From assembly GCF_006345805.1 (NCBI RefSeq), contig NC_043006.1, forward strand, positions 22,692,001-22,756,000: a DNA stretch of 64,000 nt, in the 5' to 3' direction. The notes beneath the pieces are model-generated. The model searched no databases and was not told where the DNA came from. It saw nothing but the letters and a program-made list of their open reading frames with translations. Positions 482 through 53,591 of the stretch are shown piece after piece. Source of the stretch: Octopus sinensis. Lineage: Eukaryota. A program made the position numbers and the translations under genes. Each line of letters opens with the position of its first letter. The first letter of the stretch is position 1.

Positions 482-3400
482 TTAGTTGGTGTGTGTATTA
501 GTATGGCACATCATATGTGATGTGATGTGTAAAGTCATGTGGTGTAGTGAGGAGAAGAGGGGGAGAAGAGGGTGGAGAGAAGGGGAGGGGAATAAGAGGG
601 GGAGGAGGGGGGAAGAGGAGAGGATGGGGGAGGAGAGGGGGAAGAGGAGAGGATGGGGGAGGAGGGGGATGAAGGAGGAAAGAGGGAGAGGGGGAGAGAG
701 AAGGGGAGAGAGGGAGTGAGGGAGCAGAGGGAAGGGGAAGAGGGAGGGAGAAAGAGGGAAGAAGGGAAGGGGAGTAGGGGTGAAAGGATGAAGGACTGAA
801 GAAGTAGGGGTCGGGGGGAAAGGATAGATGAGGAGGGGGGGAGAGTTGAGACCAAATGGCGTATAAGAGCGAAGAGAGAAGATTAATTCCTGTTCACGGC
901 GCAAACGGGAATCCGGATGGCCTCTGTGTAAGGACAAACCGAACACAGATAGGTGTTGCAAGGAGTGACCGGTGGAGCGGAAATGGCGTGAGACCGGTGT
1001 GTCGTTCGCAAGGTGGATGTCACGAAGGTGTTCCGCGAACCGGTCAGCCAAGCGGCGTCCCGTTTGTCCGATGTACAAGGAATTGCAGAGAGAGCAAGAG
1101 ATGCAATAGATAATATTGCTGGAGGTGCAGGTGAAGGAGTGGATGATGGGATAGGGTCGATGGTGGGTGCTAGTGAGGCGGGTGGTGTTGGAGAGGTAAG
1201 GGCAAGTGCGGCAACGTGGGCGGGAGCAGGGGAACGAGCCGGGTTGGGAGGTAGGGTCAGGGAAGGAGCTATGGACCAAAAGGTCTCGAAGGTTGTGGGC
1301 TCGTTTGAAAGAGGGGAGGGGTCGGTTAGGGAAGAGGTGTGAAGTGGACGGGTCGGACTGGAGATGACGGAAAGCTCGAAGAATGGTGCGTTGGAGACGT
1401 AGGGTCGTGGGGTGGTAAGTGAGGGGAAAAGGGAGGCGGGAGACTACAGGGCGGGTTCGGGGAGAGAGAGCAGATACACAGTCCACGGACCGTGCTCTGG
1501 CAAGGGCGGTGTGGATAGTGGTGAGGGGGTATCGACGTAGGGTGAAGTGGTGAGCCATACGTTGAGACTGAGTCTCAAAGTCATGGTCGTCACTACAGAG
1601 CCTACGTAGACGGAGGAATTGGGAATAGGGGATGGAAAGCTTGGTGTGTTCTGGGTGGGAGGAAGAGAAGTTGAGGTATGAGTGTGAGTCTGTGTGTTTG
1701 TAGTGAATGGAGGTGGTAAGAGTGGAGTGAAGAATGCTAACCGAAATGTCGAGGAAGGAGACAGAGGTGTTGGAGATAGTGGAAGTGAAGTGGAGGGCTG
1801 GATGGAAAGATTGGACGAAAGAGAGGAAGGAATCTAGATGTTCGCGGGAGAGTGAGGTGGCACCGATAATGTCGTCAATGTAACGAACATATAGTTCAGG
1901 AGTGGGATCAGTGAAATTAGAGAATATTTGGGCCTCAACATAGCCAACGAACAGGTTCGCATAGTTGGGGCCCATTCGCGTTCCCATGGCCACTCCCGAG
2001 ACCTGATGGTAGAACTCGCCCGCGAACGAGAAGCAGTTCAGAGTAAGGACAAGTTCGGCCAGACGAATGAGTGTGGAGGTGTCATGTACAGGGTTAGAGC
2101 GGAGGTCAAGAAAGTGTCGAAGGGCCTGCAGTCCTTCGTGGTGAGGGATAACAGTATAGAGGCTTTGGATGTCCATAGTAAAAAGGATTTTGGAGGAGCC
2201 GGGAGGAAAGGAGAAAGAGTTGAAAAGCCGGAGAGCATGGTTGGTATCGTGGATGTGAGAGGGAAGAGATGCCACTAGGGGGGCAAGGACACGGTCGAGG
2301 TATTTAGAGATGAGCTCCGTGGGGCAGTTACAGGCGGAGACGATGGGGCGGCCAGGGTTGTTGGGTTTGTGGATTTTGGGGAGGAAGTAAATGGTGGGGT
2401 TACGTGGGGTTCGCACAATTAGGTTGGATGCGGTGCGGGGGAGACGGGAGGACGAGATGAGGTCTTGGACAGTAGAGGATACCGTCTGTTGGTAGCTACG
2501 TGTGGGGTTAGAGGGCAGAGGGGAATAGAAGGAGGTGTCATTGAGTTGGCGGAAAGCCTCGGCCCTATAGAGGTCCACGCGCCACACCACTACAGCTCCA
2601 CCCTTGTCAGCCGGTTTGATGATAATGTCAGCGCGCCGTTGGAGGGAACGAAGAGCCAAGAGCTCAGCCGGGGAGATGTTGAGGCGGCGTTGGCACCTGG
2701 AGAAGTTGAACCGCTCCAATGCACGCTGACAAGCGCCCGCGAAAAGATCCACTGCTAGGATCTGGCCAGGGGCAGGCGTCCACGGGGATGGTCGGCGGCC
2801 CAGGCCAGTGAAGCAGTCCTCTTCGTTGGGTGTGGGTGGCGAGTCGTGGTAATGCGCACCCAACCGGACACGGCGCACAAAGCTGTGGACATCAACTCGC
2901 GTCTGGAATTCCTTACAGGATGGAGTGAGGGGGGATGAAACGCAGACCCCTACCAAGGACGGAGCGTTCAGCCGCAGAGAGGGGAAGATCGGGGGGAATG
3001 GTAACAACAGACGGAAGTGGAGAAGGGGTGGGTGGAATAGAAGTAGAGGGGTGGTAGGTCTCGTGGAGGTCTGAGGGGGAGGGATTGGGGAGGTGTGTGG
3101 GGGGTGGGTTGGGCGGGGCAGTAGGGTTAGGTGTAGGTGGATGGAGCCTAACGGGAGGGGAGAAGGGGTTGTAGGGAGGGGCAGTGGGGTTAGGTGTGGG
3201 TGGATGGAGCCTATCGGGAGGGGAGAAGGGTGGTGGAGGAGTTGGGGTAGTGGCGTCGGGTAGGGTGGAATGGAAGAGTGATTGGAGTTTACGAAGTTTG
3301 GTATCAGAAAGAAATTGATGGAAGAGTTGATTCAAATGGATAATGAAGCGTAGCGTGTTTGGAGCATAGAGAGGCGGCAGAGAGAAGAAGGTGGAGAAAG

Positions 3401-4487: not shown

Positions 4488-5174
4488 TACACAGAGAGAG
4501 AAAAACACAGAAAGAAGGAGAGAAAAAAAAATGCGTGCAGTAGCTAATGAATCAACATGGCGATCTGATTTCGGCCAGAGGTCAAAGATCAAACATGAGA
4601 TGCGAGAGCGAAATAAGGGGAGATAATAGGGTTGATAAAAGGGTTGAGGGACCAGCTAATAGTGCGTAGGAGGGGTCTGGATGTGTGTATGCATAGGGTT
4701 GGTGTATGTATTAGTATGTATAAGGGTGTGTGTGTGTGTGTGTATGAGAGAGTATTAGTGCGTAGGATTGGTCTGGACGTGCGTATGTATGGGGTTGGTG
4801 TATGTATTAGTATGTATTAGTACGTATTGGTATGTATAAGTGTGTGTGTGTGTATGAGAGAGTATAAGTGCGTATGCGGGGTCTGGACGTGTGTATGTAT
4901 AGGGTTGGTGTATGTATTAGTATGTACTAGTATGTATTAGTACGTATTAGTATGTATTAGTTGGTGTGTGTATTAGTATGGCACATCATATATATATATT
5001 AAATTAGAGATAAATCCACTATTAGGCAAATCAAACAGTGAAAAACATAAACTAAAAAATTAATTAATATAATATACAAAATATATAAAATATAAAATTC
5101 AAAATTTAAATTATTTAAATTTAAAGCTAAAAATAAAAAACTTTTTTTTAATTATTAATTTATACTTATAAATT

Positions 5175-5579: not shown

Positions 5580-5950
5580 AACCATCATCATCATCATCAT
5601 CGTTTAACGTCCGTTCTCCATGCTAGCATGGGTTGGACGGTTCGACCGGGGATCTGGGAAGCCAGAAGGCTGCACCAGGCTCCAGTCTTATCTGGCAATG
5701 TTTCTACAGCTGGATGCCCTTCCTAACGCCAACCACTCCGTGAGTGTAGTGGGTGCTTTTTACGTGCCACCTGCACAGGTGCCAGGTGAGGCTGGCAACG
5801 GCCACGGTTGGATTGGTGTATTTTACGTGCCACCGGCACGGAAGCCAGCCGAGGCGGTGCTGGCATCGGCCACGAGTCGGATAGTGCTTTTTACGTACCA
5901 CCAGACCAGGGATCCTGGCTGGTTCAATTCGATTTCGATTTCGATTTCGC
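5580..5950 (-). mobile_element. SINE-like family C (GGTTGGCGTTAGGAAGGGCATCC core, (GAT)n tail); representative copy
   Basis: Near-identical copy at 45200-45510; others at ~8470-8680(+), 23445-23590, 24890-25110(+), 28530-28680, 36345-36580, 62750-62850(+). Confidence 0.85.
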
Positions 5951-6068: not shown

Positions 6069-7487
6069 TCAGGTCTTCAATCGATGGAATCTCTTCCAAT
6101 AAGAGCATTTCATCAGACAAGTGAGAAGAAAGAAATGACTCGTTATTACTTAAATCATTTAAAACAGTAGAAAGTGGAGTTCTTGCAGCAAGTTCGTCAG
6201 TTAAACATCCACTGCAATAATCTTTACTGTCATCATAGTCTTGATTTGTACAGATATGTAAACATTCCTTACTGGCAGATAATTCTCTCATACTTTCAGT
6301 ATATCCTACTACACTGCCGGAGAGCTCTTCCCTACTACTAAATATTACTTCACTGCTTCCTAATTTTTCCTTACTTCCATACAATCCTTCCCTACTGCTA
6401 TCCATTCCTCTCAGACTTCTACGTAACCCTTTTCTACTTCTATGTGATCCTTTTCTACTGGCACATCGTGCTCTTCTGTCATCTAATACCTTTCTACTGT
6501 CATCTGATCCTCTTCTACTGTCATCTAATCCCTTTATACTGTCATCTGATCCTTTTCTACTGCCATCTGATCCCATTCTACTGTCCTCTGATTCCTTTCT
6601 ACTGCTAACTGATCCCTTTCTACTGCTAACTGATCCCTTTCTACTAACATCTGATCCCCTTCTACTGTCATATGATCCTTTTCTACTGTCACATGATCCT
6701 TTTCTACTGTCATGTGATCCTTTTCTACTCCTATGTGATCCCTTTCTACTGATATCTGATCCTTTTCTACTGCCATCTGATCCTTCCCTGCCAACATCTG
6801 ATCCTTTTCTATTGACATCTATTTCTTTTCTACTGCCATCTGATCCTTCCCTGCCTTTCTGTACTTTTTTTATACCTTCTCTAAGACTATCACAGCTATG
6901 AGATGCTTTTCTAATGCAAAGTAACAGTTCCCGATCACCATATTCGTCTTCCTTATTGCAAGGAAATCTTTCCTTAACACTGCTTAATTCTTCCTTAATG
7001 TTAGGTAATCTTTCCTTATCGACACATAATTCTTCCCTACTACTAAGTGCTTCTTCCTTACTACTATATACTTCTTCCCTCCTTTCACTTAAATCTTCCA
7101 GGCTACCAAATATTACTTCTGTATGCCCAGTTTTTCTTTCTATACTAGTAACTGATCCTTCTCCATGGCCAAATGCTTCTTCAGCATTTTCTTCTCTGCT
7201 GGTTTGTGATTTATCCTCACTGGTTTGTAATATTTCTCTACTGCCAGGTAATGCTACTTTACTGGCAAGTGATCCATTTTGACTGATAGATAATTCTTCC
7301 GTAGTGTCAAGTAACACTTCAAGAAGCTGATTTTCTCTGACATTGATGTCTTTGCTGAGATCTTGGCGTTTTAGGTTTTCATCTTCCAGTGTTCTTTCTG
7401 CTTGATCTGAAGATTTCTGGTATTCCACATCTTTAACAGCTACTTTTGACTTTTCCAAGTTATCTTTCTGGCTCTCATCATCAACAA
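6069..7487 (-). CDS. XRRA1: XRRA1-like gene, exon 8 (large low-complexity exon with 7-aa repeat array)
   Basis: Acceptor TTTCTAATTTTAG before 7487, donor GTAAGT after 6069; 1419 nt open, phase 1-1, fits the phase-1 end of exon 7. No recalled XRRA1 similarity within this exon, so inclusion is inferred. Confidence 0.7.
6340..6860 (-). repeat. Coding 21-bp minisatellite (SRKGSxx)n
   Basis: Plus-strand unit TGATCCTTTTCTACTGTCATC, more than 20 degenerate copies, in frame. Confidence 0.95.
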
Positions 7488-8306
7488 CTAAAATTAGAAA
7501 TAAGTGAATTTATTTGAAGCAGGTTACACCAAGTTTTGTAGCTAATACTAGAGGGAATGGACAGGGTCAACAGTAATGATTTCAATATATTCTTTGTACA
7601 TAAACTAACACTAGAGAGAGATGAAAAACAGGGTCAAATAAGAATTAACAGAACAAATTTAAAACATGAAATAACATCATAACCTTCTTATAGATTTTGA
7701 GCTTCATCATGTATCAATATCTCAAAGAGGTCAGTGAATTAGAATATTATTACCCTTAATTTGGTAATAGAAAATGGCATTAGAAAGCATCCAGCTGTAG
7801 AAACAATGTCAAATTTGACACTGAAACTCTGCAGCTCACAAGATCCGGTGAAACCATTCGATCAATGCCAGCATGGAAAAAGGACATCAAATGATGATAA
7901 TGATGATGACGACGACGATGATGGTGATAATGATGATGAAATAGATACAATGACTTCAACTTATTATCAATGTTTTCATACATGTACATCCAAGAATAAG
8001 ATATAATGGTCAGAGATAAAGTTAATTATAATGTAATCACCATTGTCATCATCATCATCATCATTTCTTTGATGTCCACTTTTTCATGCTTACATGAGTC
8101 ACATGGAGATCATTGAGGCAGTCTTTCAATGACTGGATGCAAATTTCTGTCACCAAACAAGGTAATGTTACCTTGTAACCTGACATGTTTTCATGGAAGA
8201 TTGGAAACAAATAACACAATGTCAAAACAAAGTGCAAGCAAACACACACATACATATTCATACATACACACGCACACAGACATATATATATATTTTTACA
8301 CTTTTC

Positions 8307-8351
<45 letters not shown>

Positions 8352-9050
8352 TTAATATTTGAGGGAATAAAATCCAAAACTTACAAGGAAAAAAAATTCA
8401 ATTTAGAAGTACTAAATCAAATTTCACACAATATAATATATATAATATAATGTAAAAAGCACCATCCAATCATGGCCGTTTGCCAGCCTCGTCTGGCACC
8501 TGTGCAGGTGGCACGTAAAAAGCACCCACTACAATCACGGAGTGGTTGGCGTTAGGAAGGGCATCCAGCTGTAGAAACACTGCCAGATCAGACTGGGCCT
8601 GGCGCAGCCTTCTGGCTTCCCAGACCCCAGTTGAACCGTCCAACCCATGCTAGGATGGAAAACGGACGTTAAACGATGACATCTGTTCCTGCATCCAATC
8701 AACACTTGGCACAAAGCCACTTCCCTCAATTCTGCAACCCCTTTCCATTAAGGAAACTTGTCTTGTGTAAGTGAAAGACTGACAGGGACATATTGAGTGA
8801 AGGGCCAAGCTGAGAGCATACATATTAAGCTTCCAGAACTTCAGTTTTGCTGAGTTAGCATCGATGGTTAGGTCTTCTTGAGTATTATATATTGTCAATT
8901 ATTTTAGTTCTTTGTCATCACCTTCATGAGGCTCAATGTCATGAGGCCAGCCTTGACCATTTTATCCTGTGCCTTCCTGGGTTTCCTTCTTCCACATGTT
9001 TCCTCCACTGTAACTGCTTAAGTGAGTGGAAGACGGAGAACCAGGAAATA

Positions 9051-11788: not shown

Positions 11789-11940
11789 CTCTGTAATAAC
11801 CGGTTTCCTTTCTTTTTATTTCTGGTTGCTGAGTATCCTGTTTAGTACTGTCCCCTACAGGAAAAAAGCTTTCTGTACTCTCCTTCTCCAAACAAGGAAT
11901 ATGGTAGATGCTGTTTCCTTCAAGGTCTAAATATATCAAG
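11789..11940 (-). CDS. XRRA1: XRRA1-like exon 7 (LIYLDLEGNSIYHIPCL...)
   Basis: CTTTTTGCAG acceptor, phase 2 start, LRR consensus, resembles XRRA1 LKKLSLDENRIIRIPYL as recalled. Donor GTTAAC is weak. Confidence 0.85.
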
Positions 11941-12821
11941 CTGCAAAAAGAGCATTTGTAAGCATTTATATCATAATCAGCATCATCATAATCATCATCA
12001 TCATCATCACCATCATCATCATCACTACCATCATCATCATCATCATAATTCCCACCATCACCACTATCACACAAATCATCATCATTATCATCATCGTCAA
12101 TTTAATGTCCACTTATCTATACTTGCATGGTTTAGACAAAATTTGTTAAGACAAATTGTCTGGGGGTGGTTGTCCTCTCCGACACCAAACTTCAACTACT
12201 CCCCCTAGTTTTAACGCAATTTCTTGGAAAACTGCACAAAAAAAAAAAAGGACAACTTGTATGACAGTAATCATATTAACTATAGGCACAAGGCCTGAGA
12301 CTTTTGAGGTAGGGGATAAGTTGATTACATCAACCCCAGGTTCTTGGTGCTAATTCCAAAAGGATGAAAGGCTAAATTGACGTTGGCAGAACTTGAACCC
12401 AAAACATAAAGACAAAAGAAATGCTGCTATGTATTTTGTCTGGCACAATAATAATTCTGACAGCTTGCTGCACTTGTATAACAGCAATACCCACTTAAAA
12501 TTTGTACATGATGTCACAACAACGAAACACACAATGGCCTTCTTTTCAGCTTGTTTACCAGATTCACTCAAAAAGCTGTGGTCAGCCTTTAGATAAGGAA
12601 ATACATACTTGCATGTTTCATAGCAATTGCAAAATCACATTTGCCAAAAACTGTAGACATAAGCCAGATTTATTTTAACACCACCCCACCATCCTGAGCG
12701 CTCAACTGGTACAAGTCGACCACAGCAGAGTTTGAACTCAGAATGTAAAGATGCACGATATATTACTAAGCATTTTACCCAGCATGCTAATGATTTTGCT
12801 AGTTCACCACTTTATAAATGA

Positions 12822-13896: not shown

Positions 13897-14001
13897 TGAG
13901 TTATATTTGCCAGAGGTATGAAGATGTCAGGACTTTCCAGTTTGTTGTAGTTCAATTTTAATACTTCTAAACGGGGAAATCGGATATATCGACCTTTCCC
14001 A
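13897..14001 (-). CDS. XRRA1: XRRA1-like exon 6 (GKGRYIRFPRLEVLKLNYNKLESPDIFIPLANIT)
   Basis: TCTTTTTCAG acceptor, GTAAGT donor, 105 nt phase 2-2; matches recalled RFPALETLMLDDNRL. Confidence 0.92.
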
Positions 14002-17632: not shown

Positions 17633-17778
17633 CTTTCTGACAATGAGAAACATTGCGTGGAGTCTGCTGGCAGGTATGATATGTCGTTGTTTCCTAAATT
17701 TAGGTACTGTAGATTTGGCATCAATCCTAAACTTTTGAAACAATCTCCTGTTAGGTTATTGTAAGAAAGATCAAGATA
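17633..17778 (-). CDS. XRRA1: XRRA1-like exon 5 (YLDLSYNNLTGDCFKSLGLMPNLQYLNLGNNDISYLP)
   Basis: TTTTTTTCAG acceptor, GTTAGC donor, 146 nt phase 0-2, two LRRs. Confidence 0.93.
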
Positions 17779-29956: not shown

Positions 29957-30054
29957 CTGAAGATGTGGAAATTCACCAAAGTTCACACTTAAATCCGTTA
30001 GTTTGTTTAATGGTAGTTTAAGTTGTATCAGACGACTGAATGATTTAAATGCCT
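29957..30054 (-). CDS. XRRA1: XRRA1-like exon 4 (EAFKSFSRLIQLKLPLNKLTDLSVNFGEFPHLQ)
   Basis: CTCTTTTAG acceptor, GTTAGT donor, 98 nt phase 1-0; matches recalled EAFHTFPALKELDL...GDFKLL. Confidence 0.92.
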
Positions 30055-31754: not shown

Positions 31755-31899
31755 CTAATTTCAAAGAATTATCTTCAGCATCAATGACTTCCAAGTTTGT
31801 GAAGAAATGAAAATCTTCAGAATTGGCAAGATTTAGCCCTTGGTTTGAGATTTTTAAGCTGAATAGTTCTTCTGGATCTGTAACTTTGCAATGTTTCAG
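31755..31899 (-). CDS. XRRA1: XRRA1-like exon 3 (LKHCKVTDPEELFSLKISNQGL...IDAEDNSLKL)
   Basis: CCCCTTCTAG acceptor, GTATGT donor, 145 nt phase 0-1; matches recalled LKHHCVRKPSDL...INASENLLPL. Confidence 0.92.
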
Positions 31900-35975: not shown

Positions 35976-36148
35976 AATATAAGGAGTATCAAAAAGAAAA
36001 GAAGATTTTTGCCAAATGCCTTTGGGAGATTTTCTTTGTGTATGTTGTTTTAATCGTTCTTTGATTTCCTCATTGGACATAATCTTTGTTTTTAATACAG
36101 TATTGAGACGGCGCAGCTGTTCTGCTTTGTAAGACTGTAGCCATGCAC
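35976..36148 (-). CDS. XRRA1: XRRA1-like exon 2 (GAWLQSYKAEQLRRLNTVL...FLFDTPYI)
   Basis: GTGTATTACCAG acceptor, GTAAGT donor, 173 nt phase 1-0, open frame, bridges exons 1 and 3. Confidence 0.88.
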
Positions 36149-36799
36149 CTGGTAATACACAAAAGAAGTGGTTTTTCAGTCAGGGCTTTTTTTTTTTAAT
36201 AATATGCTTCAGACTAAAGTAGATGTGCTATAGTGACAGTGTGCATGTGTGCGCAAAAATTGATGGTAGTCATCAGAGTAGATGTGCTAAGGTTACAGTG
36301 TACTTGTGAATGCAACAACTGATGATAGTGATCAAAGTATATCATCATCATCATCATCATCATCATCGTTTAATGTCCGTTTTCCATGCTAGCATGGGTT
36401 GGACGGTTCAACTGGGGTCTGGGGAGCCAGTAGGCTGCGCCAGGCCCAGTCTGATCTGGCAGTGTTTCTACAGCTGGATGCCCTTCCTAACGCCAACCAC
36501 TCCGAGAGTGTAGTGGGTGCTTTTTATGTGCCACCTGCACAGGTGCCAGACGAGGCTGGCAACGGCCACAATCGGATGGTGACCATATCATTATGATAAG
36601 CAGTGAGAACAGTGTAAAATTCTGTAAAATCACTGTGTGCCTCACTAGCTTCCAGTATTTAGTTCAAGACCTACTGTTGGAGGGGAAAAGCAGCAAATAG
36701 CCACTGCTATATCATTATGTTAACAAAGAAAGTAAACATTACATTTACCACTTCTGTAAGATAGTGACAAGCAAAGCAAACAAATGCCAACCTTTATGT

Positions 36800-40689: not shown

Positions 40690-42800
40690 GTACTTTGGGG
40701 TCTTATTTATCGTATATTTTTATATATTTATCTATAAATATACAAACCATTCTCACAAATTTTTCAGGGCATCCTAGCTTTTTTAGGATCTCCCAAAGTG
40801 CAATTCTATTGATAGAATCAAATGCTTTTGTTAGGTCAATGAAAACTTGGTATAAGTCCATATCCTCTTCGATGCACTTCTCTTGCAACTGTCTAGCTGA
40901 AAATATCATATCCATAGTACCCTGACTATCCCTAAACCCACATTGCGATTCTGGTAGAACCTCATCAGCAATGTGCAGAAGCAATCTATCCAGCATTGCC
41001 CTACAGAAGACCTTTCCAGCAACAGCTAACAGACAGATGCTGTGATAATTATCACAGACATCCTTTCCACCTTTAGATTTATATAGTATCTCCATAGTTG
41101 CATCACACTAATCCGGAAGAACCTCTTCACTTTGCCAAACCCTCTGAATCACATCTGTCAACATTGCACAGAGATGATCACCACCATATTTATATATCCC
41201 TGCACCTAGTCCATCTATGCCAGGGGCCTTTCCATTGTTCAATTTCCTGATTGCTGCCTTTATTTCAGCCAGGTTTGGAACTTCTGCTATAAGATGTTTT
41301 AATGGTCTCTCGGGTATATTATCAAGAAAAGAGAGATCAACTTCAGTGGGTCTATTGAGCAACTCATCAAAATGTTCTTTCCATCTCCCAACAATATCTT
41401 TAGGATTTGTTAATAATTCTGTGCCATCCTTGCTCTGAAGTGGCACAACCTTTGATGAAACTGGTCCATAAACTTTTTTCAAGAGAGAGTAAAAAAGTTT
41501 GGAATTGTTAGCATTTGAAGCTTCTTGGCTTTCATCGCATCTATCACTCAATTTTTCTGCATCATCCATAGCTTCCTCGGCACTTGCTTTTTCAGCCTTG
41601 ATATATGTAGCCACTGTACTGTTCATTGACATGTCAACATTTTGCAACATGTTAAATGCCTTTCGTTTCTCCTCTAAGATAAGATTAACTTCTTCATCAT
41701 TATCGCCAAACCAATCTTGGTGTTTTTTTTACAACAAAGCCAAGAATGTTACTACAAATCTTGTACACTCTTTCTTTGAATGACTTCCATCACAGGACAA
41801 ATTATTTATCTCACTCACAAACTCATTGCGTACTGACGGAATCTTAAGCTTATTCACATCGATCTATTTAGGCAATTTGTCACTATTTGCTCTAACATTA
41901 GACTTGACAACAGGATTCACCTTGGCATGCAAAAGCCTATGATAAGTCCAGCACTCTGCACTACACACCACTCGTACAATAACCAAGTCCCTAATATCTC
42001 ATTTCCTGGTGAGGATGTAATCTGTAAGATGCTGTTTCTTAGAACCAGGGTGCATCCATGTCATTTTATAGTTATTCTTTAGTCGAAACATTGTATTCAT
42101 GACACACAAGTTCATTTCTACGCACATTTGTAACAGTAGCAAACCATTACTGTTGGAACTCTCAACCCCATGCTTTCCTAGGACACCCCAAATCTCCCAA
42201 TCGGCACCAACGGGAGCATTAAAATCACCCGAAATGACAACTTAGTCATCATGGGGGATATTGCGTATAATCTCTGTAAGTGATAGATAGAAGGCAAGTT
42301 TATCATCCTCTGATGAATTCTTAGTTGGAGCATATGCACTTATGAGTGTTGCATAGTGACCTTTTCTTAATGGAAGTCTTAAAGACATCAAACAATCCAA
42401 ATGACCACATGGTAGTTCCTCAAGTTTTGAAGCCAGGGTGGTTTTGATAGCAAATCCCACTGCTGATTCTCTCTTATAGGTCTTTTCTCTACCGCTCCAA
42501 AAGAAATGATATCCAGCAGATTATTCTATGAAATTCCCCTTTCCATGAATTCTTGTTTCAGCTAATGCTACAACATCCGTATCATACCGCTGTAACTCTT
42601 TTGCAACAAGCGCGGATTTTCTCTCTGGACGAGACTTCAAACAATCATTGTCTAACAACGTTCAAACATTCCAGCATCCTATATTCATAGGCTTGCATCT
42701 TAACTTAGATTTACTCACAGTTGCAGGACGATGACCGGATCCAGGGACACCTGCCAGGCCAGACCACAGAACAAAATGTTCCAGAGACCTTTTTGCCATT
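40690..42800 (-). mobile_element. Degenerate RTE (BovB-like) LINE: AP endonuclease + RT
   Basis: IGCWNV...RPERKSALVAKEL...AETR; GKAPGIDGL; CGFR...GTMDMIF...QEKC...FIDLTKAFDSINR; many stops. Confidence 0.9.
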
Positions 42801-45194: not shown

Positions 45195-45598
45195 ATGTAT
45201 ATCATCATCATCATCATCATCGTTTAACGTCCGTTCTCCATGCTAGCATGGGTTGGACGGTTCAACTGGGGTCTGGGAAGCCAGAAGGCTGCACCAGGCT
45301 CCAGTCTTATCTGGCAATGTTTCTACAGCTGGATGCCCTTCCTAACGCCAACCACTCCGTGAGTGTAGTGGGTGCTTTTTACGTGCCACCTGCACAGGTG
45401 CCAGGTGAGGCTGGAAACGGCCACGGTCGGATTGGTGTATTTTATGTGCCACCGGCACGGAAGCCAGTGGAGGCGGCGCTGGCATCGGCCACAAGTCGGA
45501 TAGTGCTTTATATATATATATGTATCATCATCATCATCATCATCGTTTGATACATATATATATATAATATATATATATATAAATATATATATATATTT

Positions 45599-47260: not shown

Positions 47261-47387
47261 CATAGGAAATTACTCCATTTCGCAGTCTTATCGGGAAGTA
47301 ATTGCCTAAATAAACTCGTGACTCTGTGGAGCGGCCTGAGTTACTGCTGCTATCACTTCGGATATTTGTAAACTTCTTTGCCGCCAT
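47261..47387 (-). CDS. XRRA1: XRRA1-like exon 1 (MAAKKFTN...YLGNYFPIRL...)
   Basis: ATG in AAGATGGCGGC context, YLGNYFP resembles recalled XRRA1 YLNNCFP, donor GTTAGT, 127 nt phase 1. Confidence 0.85.
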
Positions 47388-47403: not shown

Positions 47404-47417
47404 GTTGACATGGCAAC
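47404..47417. promoter_or_regulatory. RFX X-box upstream of the XRRA1 start codon
   Basis: GTTGACATGGCAAC (reverse GTTGCCATGTCAAC), one mismatch from the palindrome GTTGCCATGGCAAC, 17-30 nt upstream of the ATG. Confidence 0.7.
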
Positions 47418-48063: not shown

Positions 48064-49600
48064 CTAGCAGTATCGCCCAGCGTTGCTCGGGTTTGTAAGG
48101 GAAATAACTATATAAGCATTTTTAGAGAGTTACTTCCCTTATAGATGCCAATTCGGGCTTTCTTAGCCATTTCTGTTTTGGTGTCTTCAAGCCATGAAGT
48201 CGTTGTTCTAAAAGAACGCTGGTCTCCTTGACAACGCATTACGACGTTGATTTCCTTACACTCCCTTCCCCACAGCTTCACGAGGGAGGGAAGAAGGGGG
48301 AGAAGCAAACAGGTGCAGGTGTGACCATGGACGCCAACTCCGCCGCCATCGACACACGAAAAATTATGCATTAAAATGGAATAAAAAATGATGTTAAATT
48401 ATTTTAAAAATCGTAGACTCATCGTAGACGCGCGCTAATAGCCAGACAGGCTCGATATGAAACACGACTATAAGATACCCGAATTTGGTTAAACTGCACC
48501 GCAAAATGTGGGAGGAGTTAGGAATCTAAATCGTAGGAGACAGACACTCACACAACTACAGTTTTATATATATACTAGCAGTATCGCCCGGCGTTGCTCG
48601 GGTTTGTAAGGGAAATAACTATATAAGCATTTTTAGAGAGTTACTTCCCTTATAAATTCGGGCTTTCTTAGCCATTTTTGTTTTGGTGTCTTCAAGCCAT
48701 GAAGTCGTTGTTCTAAAAGAACGCTGGTTTCCTTCACAACGCATTACGACGTTGATTTCTTTACACTCCCTTCCCCACAGCTTCACGAGGGAGGGAAGGG
48801 GGAGAAGCAAACAGGTGCAGCTGTGAGCGTGGACGCCAACTCCGCCGCCATCGACACACGATGCATTTTATGCATTAAAATGGAATAAAAAATGATGTTA
48901 AATTATTTTTAAAATCGTAGACTCATCGTAGACGCGCGCTAATACTCAGACGGGCTCGATATGAATCACGACTATAAGATACCCGAATTTGGTTAAACTG
49001 CACCGCAAAATGTGGGAGGAGTTAGGAATCTAAATCGAAGGGGACAGACACTCACACAACTAGAGTTTTATATATATAGATATATATACTAGCAGTATCG
49101 CCCGGCGTTGCTCGGGTTTGTAAGGGAAATAACTATATTAGCATTTTTAGAGAGTTACTTCCCTTATAGATGCCAATTCGGGCTTTCTTTGCCATTTCTG
49201 TTTTGGTGTCTTCAAGCCATGAAGTCGTTGTTCTAAAAGAACGCTGGTCTCCTTGACAACGCATTACGACGTTGATTTCTTTACACTCCCTTCCCCACAG
49301 CTTCACGAGGGAGGGAAGGGGGAGAAGCAAACAGGTGCAGCTGTGAGCATGGACGCCAACTCCGCCGCCATTGACACACGATGCATTTTATGCATTAAAA
49401 TGGAATAAAAAATGATGTTAAATTATTTTTAAAATCGTAGACTCATCGTTGACGCGCGCTAATAGCCAGACGGGCTCGATATGAATCACGACTATAAGAT
49501 ACCCGAATTTGGTTAAACTGCACCGCAAAATGTGGGAGGAGTTAGGAATCTAAATCGAAGGGGACAGACACTCACACAACTAGAGTTTTATATATATATA
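48064..49600 (-). mobile_element. Three tandem non-autonomous Helitrons with ~230-bp internal cargo
   Basis: CTAG 3' ends at 48064, 48575 and 49089; 5' (TC)TATATATAAAAC ends; separated only by (TA)n. Confidence 0.88.
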
Positions 49601-50227
49601 TATATATATATATACAAGCTTCTTTCAGTTTCCGTTTACCAAATCCACTCACAAGGCTTTGGTCGGCCGAAGGCTATAGGAGAAGACACTTGCCCAAGAT
49701 GCTACGCAGTGGGTCTGAACCCGGAACCATGTGGTTGGAAAGCAAGCTTCTTATCACACAACAACGCCAACGCCTGCGCATTATTTATAATTTGTGAAGC
49801 TGATTGAACAAACCTATGATCAGATTTTCCAGCCTTGACCACTCATCTTATTTTTTCCATCATATATTACTGTGTCCAATATACAGCTTTTATTATTATT
49901 ATTTCTTATTTATTTTTTGAGACAACCTTATGGTTGTGATTTAAGAAAGAGGTAGCTGTTATTTCTAGAGCCACATAGAGGCCGCCTCGTTGACTGATAC
50001 GTGGATATCGGTGGAGCTGTGGAGAGTGGAAGTGAGGTTGTTGGACATTTTTTTTTTTATTCCTCATAACCTCGCCTAAATGTTACAGCAATGAACGAGC
50101 AGTGAACCAACAGATGGAACTGACCACTGAGTTACAGCAACAACCTGTACATGGAGAACACTTGGACCACTGGCCGCGCTTCTCTGAGCTCAGATCTGGT
50201 TTAGAGGAAAAGTCCAGCAGCACCCAA

Positions 50228-50458
50228 GGCAACGAGCTGGCAGAAACGTTAGCACGCCGGGTGATATGCGTAGCCGTATTTCGTCCGCCGTTACGTTCCG
50301 AGTTCAAATTCCGCCGAGATCGACTTTGCCTTTCATCCTTTCGGGGTCGATAAACTAAGTACCAGTTACGCGCTGGGTCGATGTAATCAACTTAATCTCA
50401 TTGTCTGCCCTTTGTTTGTCCCATCTGTGTTTAGCCCCTTGTGGGTAGTAAAGAAATA
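50228..50458 (+). mobile_element. SINE family B (GGCGAGCTGGCAGAAACGTTAGC head, B box GAGTTCAAATTCC, GCCTTTCATCCTTTCGGGGTCGATAAA core); representative of tail type B2
   Basis: More than 20 copies, e.g. 14335-14800, 17836-18045, 22135-24810 (cluster), 26455-26680, 28740-29228, 33035-33440, 37675-38135, 51938-52700, 53650-53963, 61692-61923. Two tails: B1 ...GTGCCTATAGTAGAAAGG(ATT)n and B2 ...GCCCCTTGTGGGTAGTAAAGAAATA. Confidence 0.9.
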
Positions 50459-50829
50459 TATTTTGAAGATAGTACTACCCAGCTTGTAATCAGGAATGGG
50501 CCAAGAAGAAGTAATCTAAACATCGCCTTCCCTACGCCATCTGGCCAGATACGAAAACATTGCATTCCTTGCTCCGCCTGAGCAGCTATCCGCAGTTAGC
50601 AGACTACTCAACCGTGCAGTCGAAATCAAAGGAAAAAGATATTACAGCTAATAGCATGGAACATCCATTCAGTAACGGATAAGGGATACGAGTGTGTTGT
50701 TTTAGTTGCTTGTGGCCAGGCATTGGTCTTGTGCAGTGAGAATCAGTCCTTCCGATTCTGCTTTTAGTCCAGAGTTTTTTTTTTTTTTGGCTATTTTTAG
50801 CTTTTAAATAGGCTCACTCCTCTGTCAAA

Positions 50830-51835
50830 CTTTGCACGGTATTAACCATGGATTGTTTATTCTCTCCATTTCTTCTTTAGTATGTTTTGCAGCTCTATTT
50901 ACATGTTTTTTTGTCTCTTTGACCATTTCTTGTGTTGTCATCTGCGTATAGCTTGTTTCCATTTGTATCTTGTCGCCTCCCTTGTATAGAGAAAAGCGTC
51001 CTATTTTTTTCCTCTTTTCGTGTTGCTTTATAACGTAATAGTCGTCCACTTTTTGTAGTCCAACAGCTGTTATTTTAAAGTTGTTCTCTATCTGTGTCAG
51101 GCCGAGACTTCGTTCTGAGCCGGGTAGATATATTATCCGTCTGCTTTTGGTGACTTGGATGTACCGTTAATAGTTTTCTGGTTTTTCTAAGTTTCTTAAT
51201 TCACTAATCTTCCACTTTATTATGTTGAAGCTGTACTTAGACTGGTAACTCTAGCCTTTTTACCCATATCTTATTTTCAGCGTTGAATTCAGTATTTAAT
51301 TTCAGTCTAACTTTTCTGTAGTATTTTCTCGTGATTTCCTTTCTTTTATGAGTTGTATTTTAACTATTTCGTCTGCTCCTAGATATTCATATAGGCGATT
51401 GTGGTCCAATTTTCTGGTTTCTGTGTCTATGTCGTTTACAATGCTGATTAATTTGCCCCTTCTTTGTCAGTTTAGCACATTTGTCCATTCGCAAGCTCAT
51501 CACGATGTCCTTGCTGAAATTATGGACAATTTTTAGAAAGATTTTTTTTTTGTTCCGTGATAATTTTAGTGAACATTTAAAAGATATCCATGTTTTCGAC
51601 ATGATTTGTTTGTCCATTGCATATATAACCTATGTTGGTTTCGTTTAAGAAGTTTGTAGGGTCAGAGTAAGGCAGAAAAGCAGAGGTGACAATGAGTCTC
51701 CTTGAAAAATTTTTCTTTTTATGGGTGTAGGACCGGTTTTCATAACTTGTGATTGATTTTTCAGTGTTATGCTGGTTTTCCAGTTTGCCATTGCATGGTT
51801 GATAGTGCTGAAGCTACTTTATTTGCACTTTATTC
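50830..51835 (-). mobile_element. Degenerate 5'-truncated R4/Dong-type LINE
   Basis: Minus-strand translation gives IFQGDSLSPLLFCL and YEYLG...YYRKVRL...NTE; begins right after a (TAA)n tract. Confidence 0.75.
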
Positions 51836-51939: not shown

Positions 51940-52748
51940 AGCGGCGAATTGGCAGAAACGTTAGCACGCCGGCCGAAATGCGTAGCCGTATTTCGTCTGC
52001 CGTTAAGTTCTGAGTTCAAATTCGGCCGAGGTCGACTTTGCCTTTCATCCTTTCGGGGTCGATAAATTAAGTACCTGTTACGCACTGGGATCGATATAAT
52101 CGACTTCATCCGTTTGTCTGTCCTTGTTTGTCCTCTCTGTGTTTAGCCCCTTGTGGGTAGTAAAGAAATAGGTATTTCGTCTGCCGTTAAGTTCTGAGTT
52201 CAAATTCCGTCGAGGTCGACTTTGCCTTTCATCCTTTAGGGGTCGATAAATTAAGTACCTGTTACGCACTTGGATCGATAAAATCGACTTCGTCCGTTTG
52301 TCTGTCCTTGTTTGTCCTCTCTGTGTTTAGCCCCTTGTGGATAATAAAGAAATAGGTATTTCGTCTGCCGCTACGTTCTGAGTTCAAATTCGGCCGAGGT
52401 CGACTTTGCCTTTCATCCTTTCGGGGTCGATTAAATAAGTACCAGTTAGGCACTGGGGTCGATATAATCGACTTAATACCTATGTCTGTCCTTGTTTAGC
52501 CCCTTGTGGGCAATAAAGAAATAGGTATTTCATTTGTCGCTACGTTCTGAGTTCAAATTCCGTCGAGGTCGACTTCGCTTTCATTCTTTCGCGGTCGATA
52601 AATTAAGTACCAGTTGAGAACTGAGGTCGATGTGATCGACTATCCCCTTCCCCAAATTTCAGGCTTTGTGCCTATGGTAGAAAGGTTTATTATTATTATT
52701 AAAATAAAATGAAAGTGAAGTGGATCAGAGTTTTGTATGTATTATAAA

Positions 52749-53259
52749 CTAGCAGTATCGCCCGGCGTTGCTCGGGTTTGTAAGGGAAATAACTATATAA
52801 GTATTTTTAGAGTTACTTCCCTTATAGATGCCAATTCGGGCTTTCTTAGCCATTTCTGTTTTGGTGTCTTCAAGCCATGAAGTCGTTGTTCTAAAAGAAC
52901 GCTGGTCTCCTTGACAACGCTTTACGACGTTGATTTCCTTACACTCCCTTCCCCACAGCTTCACGAGGGAGGGAAGAAGGGGGAGAAGCAAACAGGTGCA
53001 GGTGTGACCATGGACGCCAACTCCGCCGCCATCGACACACGAAAAATTATGCATTAAAATGGAATAAAAAATTATGTTAAATTATTTTTAAAATCGTAGA
53101 CTCATCGTAGACGCGCGCTAATACTCAGACGGGCTCGATATGAATCACGACTATAAGATACCCGAATTTGGTTAAACTGCACCGCAAAATGTGGGAGTAG
53201 TTAGGAATCTAAATCGAAGGGGACAGACACTCACACAACTACAGTTTTATATATATAGA
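52749..53259 (-). mobile_element. Non-autonomous Helitron, cargo-bearing form
   Basis: Same structure as the 48064 copy; TC...CTAG; A|T target. Confidence 0.88.
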
Positions 53260-53591
53260 TAGGTAATAATTGTCATATTATTTTTTTAAAATGCGTCATA
53301 TTAAAACCCATTTTGTATTTGATATTACCACTCAGTGTTGTCCTGTAGTCCTCCCGTACACAGTCTATATCTTATCTTATCTTGCAGACGTATTTCTTTT
53401 GCCAAAAGAAGAAAATTGTAAGTCGTTTAATTTGTTCCAGTGAATTAATTTCCTGCAAGATTCAAGGTCAATTTCTATAAAGGAACAATAGATATAATTA
53501 ACCGTAATATAAATGAATATACAAGAAAGCGCTATCTGATGTGTCTGTCTATTTATATACCTTGTGATTGTTTGGGGCAAGTCTCTTTCCG

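Follow-up and report, generated by a model that had tools for sequence, protein, structure and literature searches.

Why should the gene for a leucine-rich repeat (LRR) protein of an octopus carry a 1.4-kb internal exon with a long array of seven-residue repeats? The exon in question lies at positions 6069-7487, on the minus strand, of a 64,000-nucleotide stretch of Octopus sinensis DNA (assembly GCF_006345805.1, contig NC_043006.1, positions 22,692,001 to 22,756,000), which we refer to as the window. The window is an exact piece of chromosome CM016868.1, and the exon belongs to the gene LOC115216585. With a probability of roughly 0.6, we regard it as a genuine coding exon of an XRRA1 orthologue that encodes a disordered insert of ~470 residues between two LRR blocks and carries an unstable 21-bp coding minisatellite. 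An original prediction, made from the DNA letters alone, had placed the exon in XRRA1 and had proposed for it a regulatory role that we weigh below.

The exon and its gene

The exon is 1419 nt long, or 473 codon-equivalents, with GT-AG introns on either side and phase 1 at both ends; it starts with two codon-completing bases and finishes with one surplus base. Its coding frame has no stops in 472 codons, where the base composition predicts 0.082 stops per codon (P ~3e-18), and each of the other five frames has 8 to 82 stops. An in-frame TAA lies two codons inside the intron after the donor. The following exon is ~14 kb further on, beyond the window, and begins AA/TTA TTC, which confirms the phase-1 exit. 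A spliced gene model with eight GT-AG exons inside the window (Table 1) matches RefSeq residues 1-330 exactly, so that both the symmetric phase-1 exon of 473 codons and the junction from 11789 to 7487, which the RefSeq protein also contains, are as originally predicted.

The identity of the gene follows from several searches. In RefSeq, O. sinensis isoforms X1 and X2 and the O. vulgaris protein are named "X-ray radiation resistance-associated protein 1-like," and the label given to isoform X3 and to the O. bimaculoides model is "uncharacterized." An exhaustive HMMER scan of representative proteins with the exon as the query returned XP_036362238.1 (O. sinensis isoform X3, 100% identical) and XP_014776026.1 (O. 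bimaculoides, 67% identical). When the protein minus the exon was the query, the best non-octopus match was XRRA1 of the lizard Salvator merianae (UniRef, E 5e-41), followed by a plant LRR kinase and generic LRR proteins at E 6e-17. BLASTP aligns the octopus and lizard proteins in three collinear blocks, corresponding to the N-terminal region with LRR block 1 (octopus 26-282, lizard 15-262, E 4e-37), LRR block 2 (octopus 858-968, lizard 347-451, E 1e-10), and the C-terminal region (octopus 1095-1188, lizard 1076-1174, E 1e-3). The RefSeq names, the gap between the lizard and the next matches, and the collinear blocks support the predicted assignment of LOC115216585 as an XRRA1 orthologue.

Other searches were less specific. 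Among Pfam families, only those of LRRs match the octopus and lizard proteins, and none scored above its cutoff in the exon; we discounted a match there to Ino80_Iec3, whose 19 bits fall short of the cutoff of 27. A search of the Protein Data Bank yielded no XRRA1 structure, only generic LRR receptors. In a word-indexed protein search, the exon alone gave no match and the concatenated LRR exons gave plant LRR proteins only, probably because true relatives were displaced by low-complexity words.

The exon occupies the stretch that separates LRR block 1 from LRR block 2, within the LRR region as had been proposed. The linker between the blocks has 575 residues in the octopus but 84 in S. merianae, the single vertebrate orthologue compared, and the exon accounts for the difference; the short vertebrate linker of the original prediction is therefore borne out in that one orthologue. 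The lizard protein has the same order of parts (N-terminal region, LRR block 1, linker, short LRR block 2, C-terminal region), and the conserved C-terminal region with its KYKGYE motif is common to both. Local alignment of the two linkers did not score above shuffles (P = 0.085 and 0.29). Both linkers have a TEV[IL]F motif and a basic S/R/K patch; the motif is not kept in O. bimaculoides. Unlike the octopus, the lizard has a long Pro/Ser/Glu/Gln-rich stretch of its own in a different linker, after LRR block 2: residues ~480-1070 of its 1265-aa protein are visibly repetitive and unrelated to the octopus insert. It may be that linkers of XRRA1 readily expand on independent occasions, or else that the lizard model is mis-predicted.

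We found the exon in O. sinensis, O. vulgaris, and O. bimaculoides (RefSeq, ENA, and UniRef proteins). In a search of 1.84 billion representative proteins, matches beyond two Octopus clusters were limited to the repeat region. We rejected these as XRRA1 relatives, since the rest of XRRA1 is unlike them and they are low-complexity arrays of heptads, algal or metagenomic in source and unrelated to it. The predicted lineage specificity thus goes as far as the presence of the exon in three Octopus species and the lack of a detectable relative among the 1.84 billion representatives.

The gene models differ elsewhere. Isoform X3 lacks the 105-nt exon 13897-14001, an in-frame skip of one LRR and the preceding loop within LRR block 1. 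Beyond the window, isoform X2 reads KRVENYY where X1 and X3 read KRVQNYY, a single-residue difference; the cause is a paired shift at the last intron, with the donor at CGG/GTCCAA or CAA/GTTTCA and the acceptor at ACAG/GTTGAG or GTTGAG/AAT (~99950-99965 and 103975-103990 in a chromosome segment where the large exon is 49901-51319). In O. bimaculoides the RefSeq model ends at 1018 aa, and the exons that match the C-terminal ~240 residues of the O. sinensis protein belong to the next annotated gene, which has a 276-aa product; these exons lie within 74253-80954 of its locus segment, so the XRRA1-like gene appears to be split in that annotation.

Table 1. Features of the XRRA1-like gene in the window, all on the minus strand
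Feature	Position	Strand	Basis or remark
First coding exon, ATG at 47387	47261..47387	-	Spliced model
Coding exon 2	35976..36148	-	Spliced model
Coding exon 3	31755..31899	-	Spliced model
LRR exon	29957..30054	-	Spliced model
LRR exon	17633..17778	-	Spliced model
105-nt LRR exon, left out of RefSeq isoform X3	13897..14001	-	Spliced model, isoform comparison
Upstream exon: last LRR of block 1 and start of linker; phase-1 donor joins the large exon	11789..11940	-	Spliced model
Acceptor AG, ttctaattttag/TT	7488..7489	-	O. vulgaris identical; O. bimaculoides 1 base different in polypyrimidine tract
Large internal coding exon, XRRA1-like LOC115216585	6069..7487	-	RefSeq protein residues 316 onward; direct reading
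N-terminal acidic flank, residues 1-125, net charge -13	7111..7485	-	Non-repetitive; short conserved islands amid variable stretches
Older degenerate heptads x-S-S-[KR]-E-E-L, residues 126-209	6859..7110	-	Tandem Repeats Finder, unit reading
Core 21-bp coding minisatellite, residues 210-370, net charge +20	6376..6858	-	Consensus GACAGTAGAAAAGGATCAGAT = D-S-R-K-G-S-D; 13 of the 14 R-[KR]-x-S motifs
Range holding 84-nt segment (4 heptads, 28 aa)	6741..6835	-	In assembly, missing from all three O. sinensis RefSeq proteins
Two heptads, SIKGLDDSRRGSDD, 42 nt, in O. sinensis, not O. vulgaris	6499..6540	-	Placement ambiguous within repeat
C-terminal acidic flank, residues 371-472, net charge -14	6070..6375	-	Charge count, species comparison
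Donor GT, ACCTGA/GTAAGTAA	6067..6068	-	Same in all three Octopus species

Repeat units, disorder, and copy number

Tandem Repeats Finder reports 17.9 copies of a period of 21 at 6472-6846 (81% match) and further period-21 and period-42 arrays at 6367-6459 and 6947-7243, for a total of ~30 units. The heptad register runs through exon residues ~126-405 with a one-residue slip near residue 336. Along the exon, older x-S-S-[KR]-E-E-L units are followed by a core of 18-23 x-S-R-K-G-S-D units and then by a degenerate tail; within the window, matches to the core consensus are confined to 6376-6858. The last ~55 residues of the C-terminal flank (DYCSGCLT...IPSIEDL) are the part of the exon best conserved between species. 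The term "heptad" refers here to a seven-residue period only, not to a coiled coil: we rejected coiled-coil heptads, since x-S-R-K-G-S-D has no hydrophobic a and d positions and AlphaFold2 (AF2) places no helix in the array.

The motif R-[KR]-x-S occurs 14 times in the exon, 13 times in the array and once as RKAS at residue 192. Composition-preserving shuffles have 1.47 +/- 1.18 such motifs, and none of 20000 reaches 14; the excess is a by-product of unit duplication, not of 14 independent events. The corresponding counts are 12 in O. vulgaris and 14 in O. bimaculoides. More than 20 heptads, 13 of them with R-[KR]-x-S, and acidic flanks had been predicted, and all of these features are present, the flanks being negatively and the core positively charged (Table 1). 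By charge-hydropathy analysis every segment of the exon falls on the disordered side and the LRR controls fall on the folded side. In the AF2 model of the O. bimaculoides protein, the predicted local distance difference test score (pLDDT) is ~23-30 across the exon, compared to 70-91 in LRR block 1.

The orthologous exons measure 1419 nt (O. sinensis), 1377 nt (O. vulgaris), and 1449 nt (O. bimaculoides); each length is a multiple of 3, and their splice sites are the same apart from the single polypyrimidine-tract base noted in Table 1. The 84-nt segment that the O. sinensis gene models lack has an 11- to 12-nt direct repeat at its bounds. An intron was rejected, as 0 of 12 equivalent placements have GT-AG, GC-AG, or AT-AC ends; the gap points instead to an allelic copy-number variant in the transcript evidence, or to a template-switch artifact. 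The S-R-K-G-S-D units of O. bimaculoides are near-identical DNA copies of AGTAGAAA[AG]GGATCAGATGGC, and a different unit, SKERLPN, has grown to 5-6 copies in the older-heptad region of that species only. Read from these alignments, the pattern is one of concerted evolution of an unstable coding array, homogenised within species. The minisatellite expansion in the original prediction is supported by the period of 21 and by the whole-unit, in-frame copy differences, which were seen between species and between genome and gene models rather than within a population.

Selection, function, and competing explanations

Rates of evolution were compared between O. sinensis and O. bimaculoides. Their exons differ at 201 nucleotides and by several indels, all of which are in frame. 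None of the 201 differences is a nonsense change, whereas ~13 would be expected (6.5% of possible substitutions would create a stop; P ~2e-6), and together with the in-frame indels this shows that the reading frame is under selection. In the exon the ratio of non-synonymous to synonymous divergence (dN/dS) reaches 1.65, with 1.6-1.8 in the non-repeat flanks and 1.8-1.9 in the neighbouring linker segments; in the two LRR blocks it is 0.55-0.64. The XRRA1-like gene is fast overall, with a dN/dS of 0.95 over 750 codons outside the exon and 1.17 in the C-terminal region.

Divergence at 0-fold sites is 0.163 in the exon and 0.148 in the flanks, compared to 0.053 at 4-fold sites and to 0.084 over 16.3 kb of collinear intron (alignable segments only). 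Amino-acid-changing sites diverge about twice as fast as introns (flanks versus introns, binomial P = 1e-5), and over the whole exon the contrast of 0-fold with 4-fold sites has a Fisher P of 0.0035. The simplest reading would be diversifying or positive selection on the disordered linker. Within the array, codons 1 and 7 have 25 non-synonymous and 2 synonymous differences, compared to 16 and 12 in S-R-K-G-S, a weak indication of constraint on the motif.

Whether the motifs are targets of a particular kinase depends on their surroundings. The cAMP-dependent protein kinase (PKA) favours a hydrophobic residue at +1. The residues found there are D5, H4, V2, C1, Y1, and E1 at the 14 O. sinensis sites and D11, H1, P1, and S1 at the 14 O. 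bimaculoides sites; only ~2 of the O. sinensis sites have a hydrophobic +1 residue, which departs from the PKA preference. The predicted PKA-type sites are therefore real as far as the R-[KR]-x-S core goes (14, 12, and 14 in the three species), and with Asp, His, or Glu at most +1 positions the specificity for PKA is doubtful. The motif would fit basophilic kinases in general. From the S-x-x-x-S and S-D-x-S spacing we infer that primed GSK3-type or CK2-type phosphorylation would be allowed, and multisite, or bulk, phosphorylation of the array is plausible.

Skipping of the exon would preserve the frame, since the exon begins and ends in phase 1 and its length is a multiple of 3, and the joined codon G/AA would read Glu. 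No isoform lacking the exon is found among X1, X2, X3, and the models of O. vulgaris and O. bimaculoides, and none of four constructed exon-skipped proteins is present in a collection of 15 billion proteins. Of the claim that the exon is skippable, the preserved frame thus stands, while every annotated isoform includes the exon and no skipped protein was found in the collection; such annotation is still compatible with rare skipping. The annotated cassette of the XRRA1-like gene is exon 13897-14001, not the large exon.

The array had also been proposed as a target of adenosine-to-inosine (A-to-I) recoding. Its RNA has a minimum free energy of -50 kcal/mol, compared to -49.95 for shuffles (z = -0.01), and this lack of excess folding leaves the proposal unsupported here. 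The only long inverted repeats near the exon are two arms resembling a short interspersed nuclear element (SINE), at 5682-5826 and 8452-8596, one in each flanking intron. These arms are 145 nt long, 88% complementary, and in opposite orientation, and further copies lie at 45301-45444 and 36446-36581. Such arms might promote back-splicing or editing within the introns. Both O. sinensis and O. vulgaris have the inverted pair; because O. bimaculoides lacks it, we rejected it as a conserved looping device.

Only two observations hint at a function in cilia or sperm. An X-box (RFX)-like palindrome, GTTGCCATGTCAAC, at 47404-47417 on the minus strand, ends 17 nt upstream of the ATG of the XRRA1-like gene (47387) and is the sole match with at most 1 mismatch to GTTRCCATGGYAAC in the 64-kb window. 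O. vulgaris has the identical site, with its annotated ATG falling within it, and O. bimaculoides has GTTGCTATGTCAAC in the corresponding position. The other observation is that human XRRA1 expression peaks in testis (bioRxiv 10.64898/2026.04.21.719372). A literature search linked XRRA1 to neither cilia nor cephalopods and turned up human testis enrichment and cancer or radiation studies only; the vertebrate XRRA1 papers that were found deal with testis expression and the response to radiation rather than with repeats or phosphorylation.

The coding-insert reading that we favour would bring these findings together as follows. The ~470 residues would form an intrinsically disordered insert in a loop between the two LRR blocks. 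Its array gains and loses whole units, probably by slippage or unequal exchange, and is homogenised within each species, and the dominant unit, x-S-R-K-G-S-D, thereby yields 12-14 minimal basophilic-kinase motifs between acidic flanks. Selection holds the frame open for the sake of LRR block 2 and the conserved C terminus downstream and does not preserve the amino-acid sequence, whose rate of change exceeds that of neutral DNA. The insert would then serve as a flexible, highly charged spacer in which length, charge, and bulk phosphorylation state outweigh exact sequence, and its fast evolution may reflect a reproductive role in sperm or testis.

Much of this evidence could be read differently. 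In a neutral, or "junk," expansion the array would be tolerated slippage filler, R-K-G-S would have no function of its own, and the frame alone would be selected. A dN/dS of at least 1 under strict frame maintenance fits such an expansion, and so do the growth of different unit types in different species, the variable copy number, the 84 residues with which the lizard orthologue manages at this site, and the unrelated low-complexity stretch in the other lizard linker. Pure neutrality does not, however, predict amino-acid-changing sites that evolve at ~2 times the intron rate, and within the array S-R-K-G-S is less variable than codons 1 and 7; in addition, the ~55-residue C-terminal block and several islands in the N-terminal flank are well conserved between species. 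We regard neutral expansion as unlikely, although it deserves to be kept in mind. Much harder to credit is an RNA-level role in which the purine-rich, GAR-type units are exonic splicing enhancers for recognition of a 1.4-kb internal exon. The exon is 65.5% purine on the sense strand, compared to 49-59% in the other seven coding exons, and its synonymous and 4-fold divergence of 0.05-0.10 is not above the intron rate despite the fast amino-acid sites; the purine richness nonetheless comes automatically with codons for Lys, Arg (AGA), Glu, Gly, and Ser (AGT), and such a role would be compatible with the coding-insert reading rather than exclusive of it.

The original prediction went further, taking the exon for an alternatively skipped cassette that acts as a cAMP/PKA multisite phospho-switch for ciliary or sperm XRRA1 function. 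The symmetric phases, the 12-14 motifs kept in three species, the X-box-like site near the ATG and its O. bimaculoides counterpart, the human testis expression, and the inverted intron arms, by which the exon might be looped out in both O. sinensis and O. vulgaris, are all in line with this proposal. We nevertheless consider it improbable, since the exon is in every annotated or stored isoform, the +1 residues are sub-optimal for PKA, and the motif equally fits CaMKII, PKC, PKG, Aurora-type, and acidophilic kinases; furthermore, the arms are not conserved in O. bimaculoides and belong to an element common in the window, no link of XRRA1 to cilia came from the literature search, and rapid turnover with loss of the motif in about a quarter of the units argues against precise tuning. 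Hardly any weight attaches to an annotation artifact, that is, a chance or repeat-driven open reading frame (ORF) in an intron, outside the mRNA. Tandem repeats can hold several frames open, and there is a second sense frame of 94 codons and an antisense one of 218, but about 310 of the 472 open codons are non-repeat, all three species keep the splice sites and both phases, the indels and the missing nonsense changes speak for a maintained frame, and independent annotation pipelines included the exon.

Several points weigh against the coding-insert reading. Expression of the exon rests on gene models from annotation pipelines. The excess of dN over dS could be inflated by alignment of non-orthologous units within the repeats, the 0-fold versus 4-fold contrast in the flanks alone is not significant (P = 0.088), synonymous sites are few, and the intron rate comes from alignable segments. 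The signal of constraint within the array is fragile, since differences among repeat units are not independent and one AAA/AAG site accounts for 8 of the 14 "synonymous" differences, and ~5 of 18 core units are already without R-[KR]-x-S. The AF2 alignment contained only 4 sequences, and LRR block 2 is also of low confidence, so the low pLDDT is weak evidence of disorder.

A more ambitious idea, to which we give little credence, is that of a copy-number-variable phosphorylation "rheostat" in sperm or ciliary XRRA1, with the number of basophilic-kinase sites, and through it the charge of the loop, tuned by repeat gain and loss under sexual selection in octopuses. If this were true, the performance of sperm or cilia would depend on repeat number as a heritable trait that evolves fast.

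Other elements in the window and comparison with known systems

The window holds several mobile and repetitive elements. At 485-3331 on the minus strand, an ORF of 949 codons is intact and encodes a reverse-transcriptase domain (Pfam RVT_1, E 1e-8); it lies in the intron downstream of the large exon and in a block of 51-53% GC with strong GC skew. It is flanked by 96%-identical direct repeats at 1-266 and 4495-4760, 4494 bp apart. A GIY-YIG-like "LYIGQTGRRL," read by eye and unconfirmed by Pfam, suggests a putative Penelope-like element. A degraded element resembling a long interspersed nuclear element is found at 40706-42661, minus strand, in the intron between coding exons 1 and 2, with an RVT_1 fragment (E 2e-12) and upstream ORF pieces broken by stops and frameshifts. 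Upstream of the 5' end of the gene there are three tandem copies of a ~505- to 520-bp unit at 48121-49602, a fourth copy 3.6 kb away at 52804-53261, and a 184-bp tandem array at 51988-52539. A GAT-rich microsatellite at 11969-12101, open on the minus strand as a poly-Asp ORF, lies directly upstream of the acceptor of exon 11789-11940 and is intronic in the gene models.

Public gene models already contain the exon itself; our additions are descriptions of the unstable kinase-motif array and of a linker that evolves faster than neutral DNA. Lineage-specific growth of a repeat within a linker is nothing out of the ordinary and involves no new mechanism. We know of no mechanism for XRRA1, a poorly understood, testis-enriched LRR protein, and in the octopus its loop tolerates, and perhaps exploits, a disordered insertion of 470 residues. 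The locus is also a small case study of how tandem-repeat instability may create and multiply kinase-type motifs in a disordered region. If repeat number is polymorphic, the array offers a ready-made marker and a testable tie of repeat length to a reproductive or ciliary phenotype.

Among known systems, coding minisatellites, or variable-number tandem repeats, are close in form. Like these, the octopus array has a short period (21 bp), ~18-30 copies, gain and loss of whole units in frame, and a deletion bounded by direct repeats; its copy-number differences are known between species and between genome and models, not within a population.

The KSP tail of the neurofilament heavy chain and the C-terminal domain (CTD) of RNA polymerase II are disordered tandem repeats that serve as multisite kinase substrates. 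The octopus array resembles them in having a short tandem unit with a serine kinase motif, present in tens of copies in a disordered region, with variable copy number and a drifting unit sequence. The KSP tail and the CTD have proline-directed sites (KSP and SP), experimentally shown phosphorylation, and long conservation, whereas the octopus unit is basophilic (R-K-G-S-D), known only from Octopus, fast-evolving, and a putative kinase target.

Abalone VERL is a repetitive reproductive protein with concerted evolution of its repeats, folded units of ~150 residues, and a demonstrated role in sperm-egg binding. The octopus array shares with it units that are homogenised within species and differ between species, together with raised non-synonymous rates. 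It is unlike VERL in that its units have 7 residues and lie in a disordered linker, and the reproductive role that we infer for it would be the counterpart of one that has been demonstrated in the abalone.

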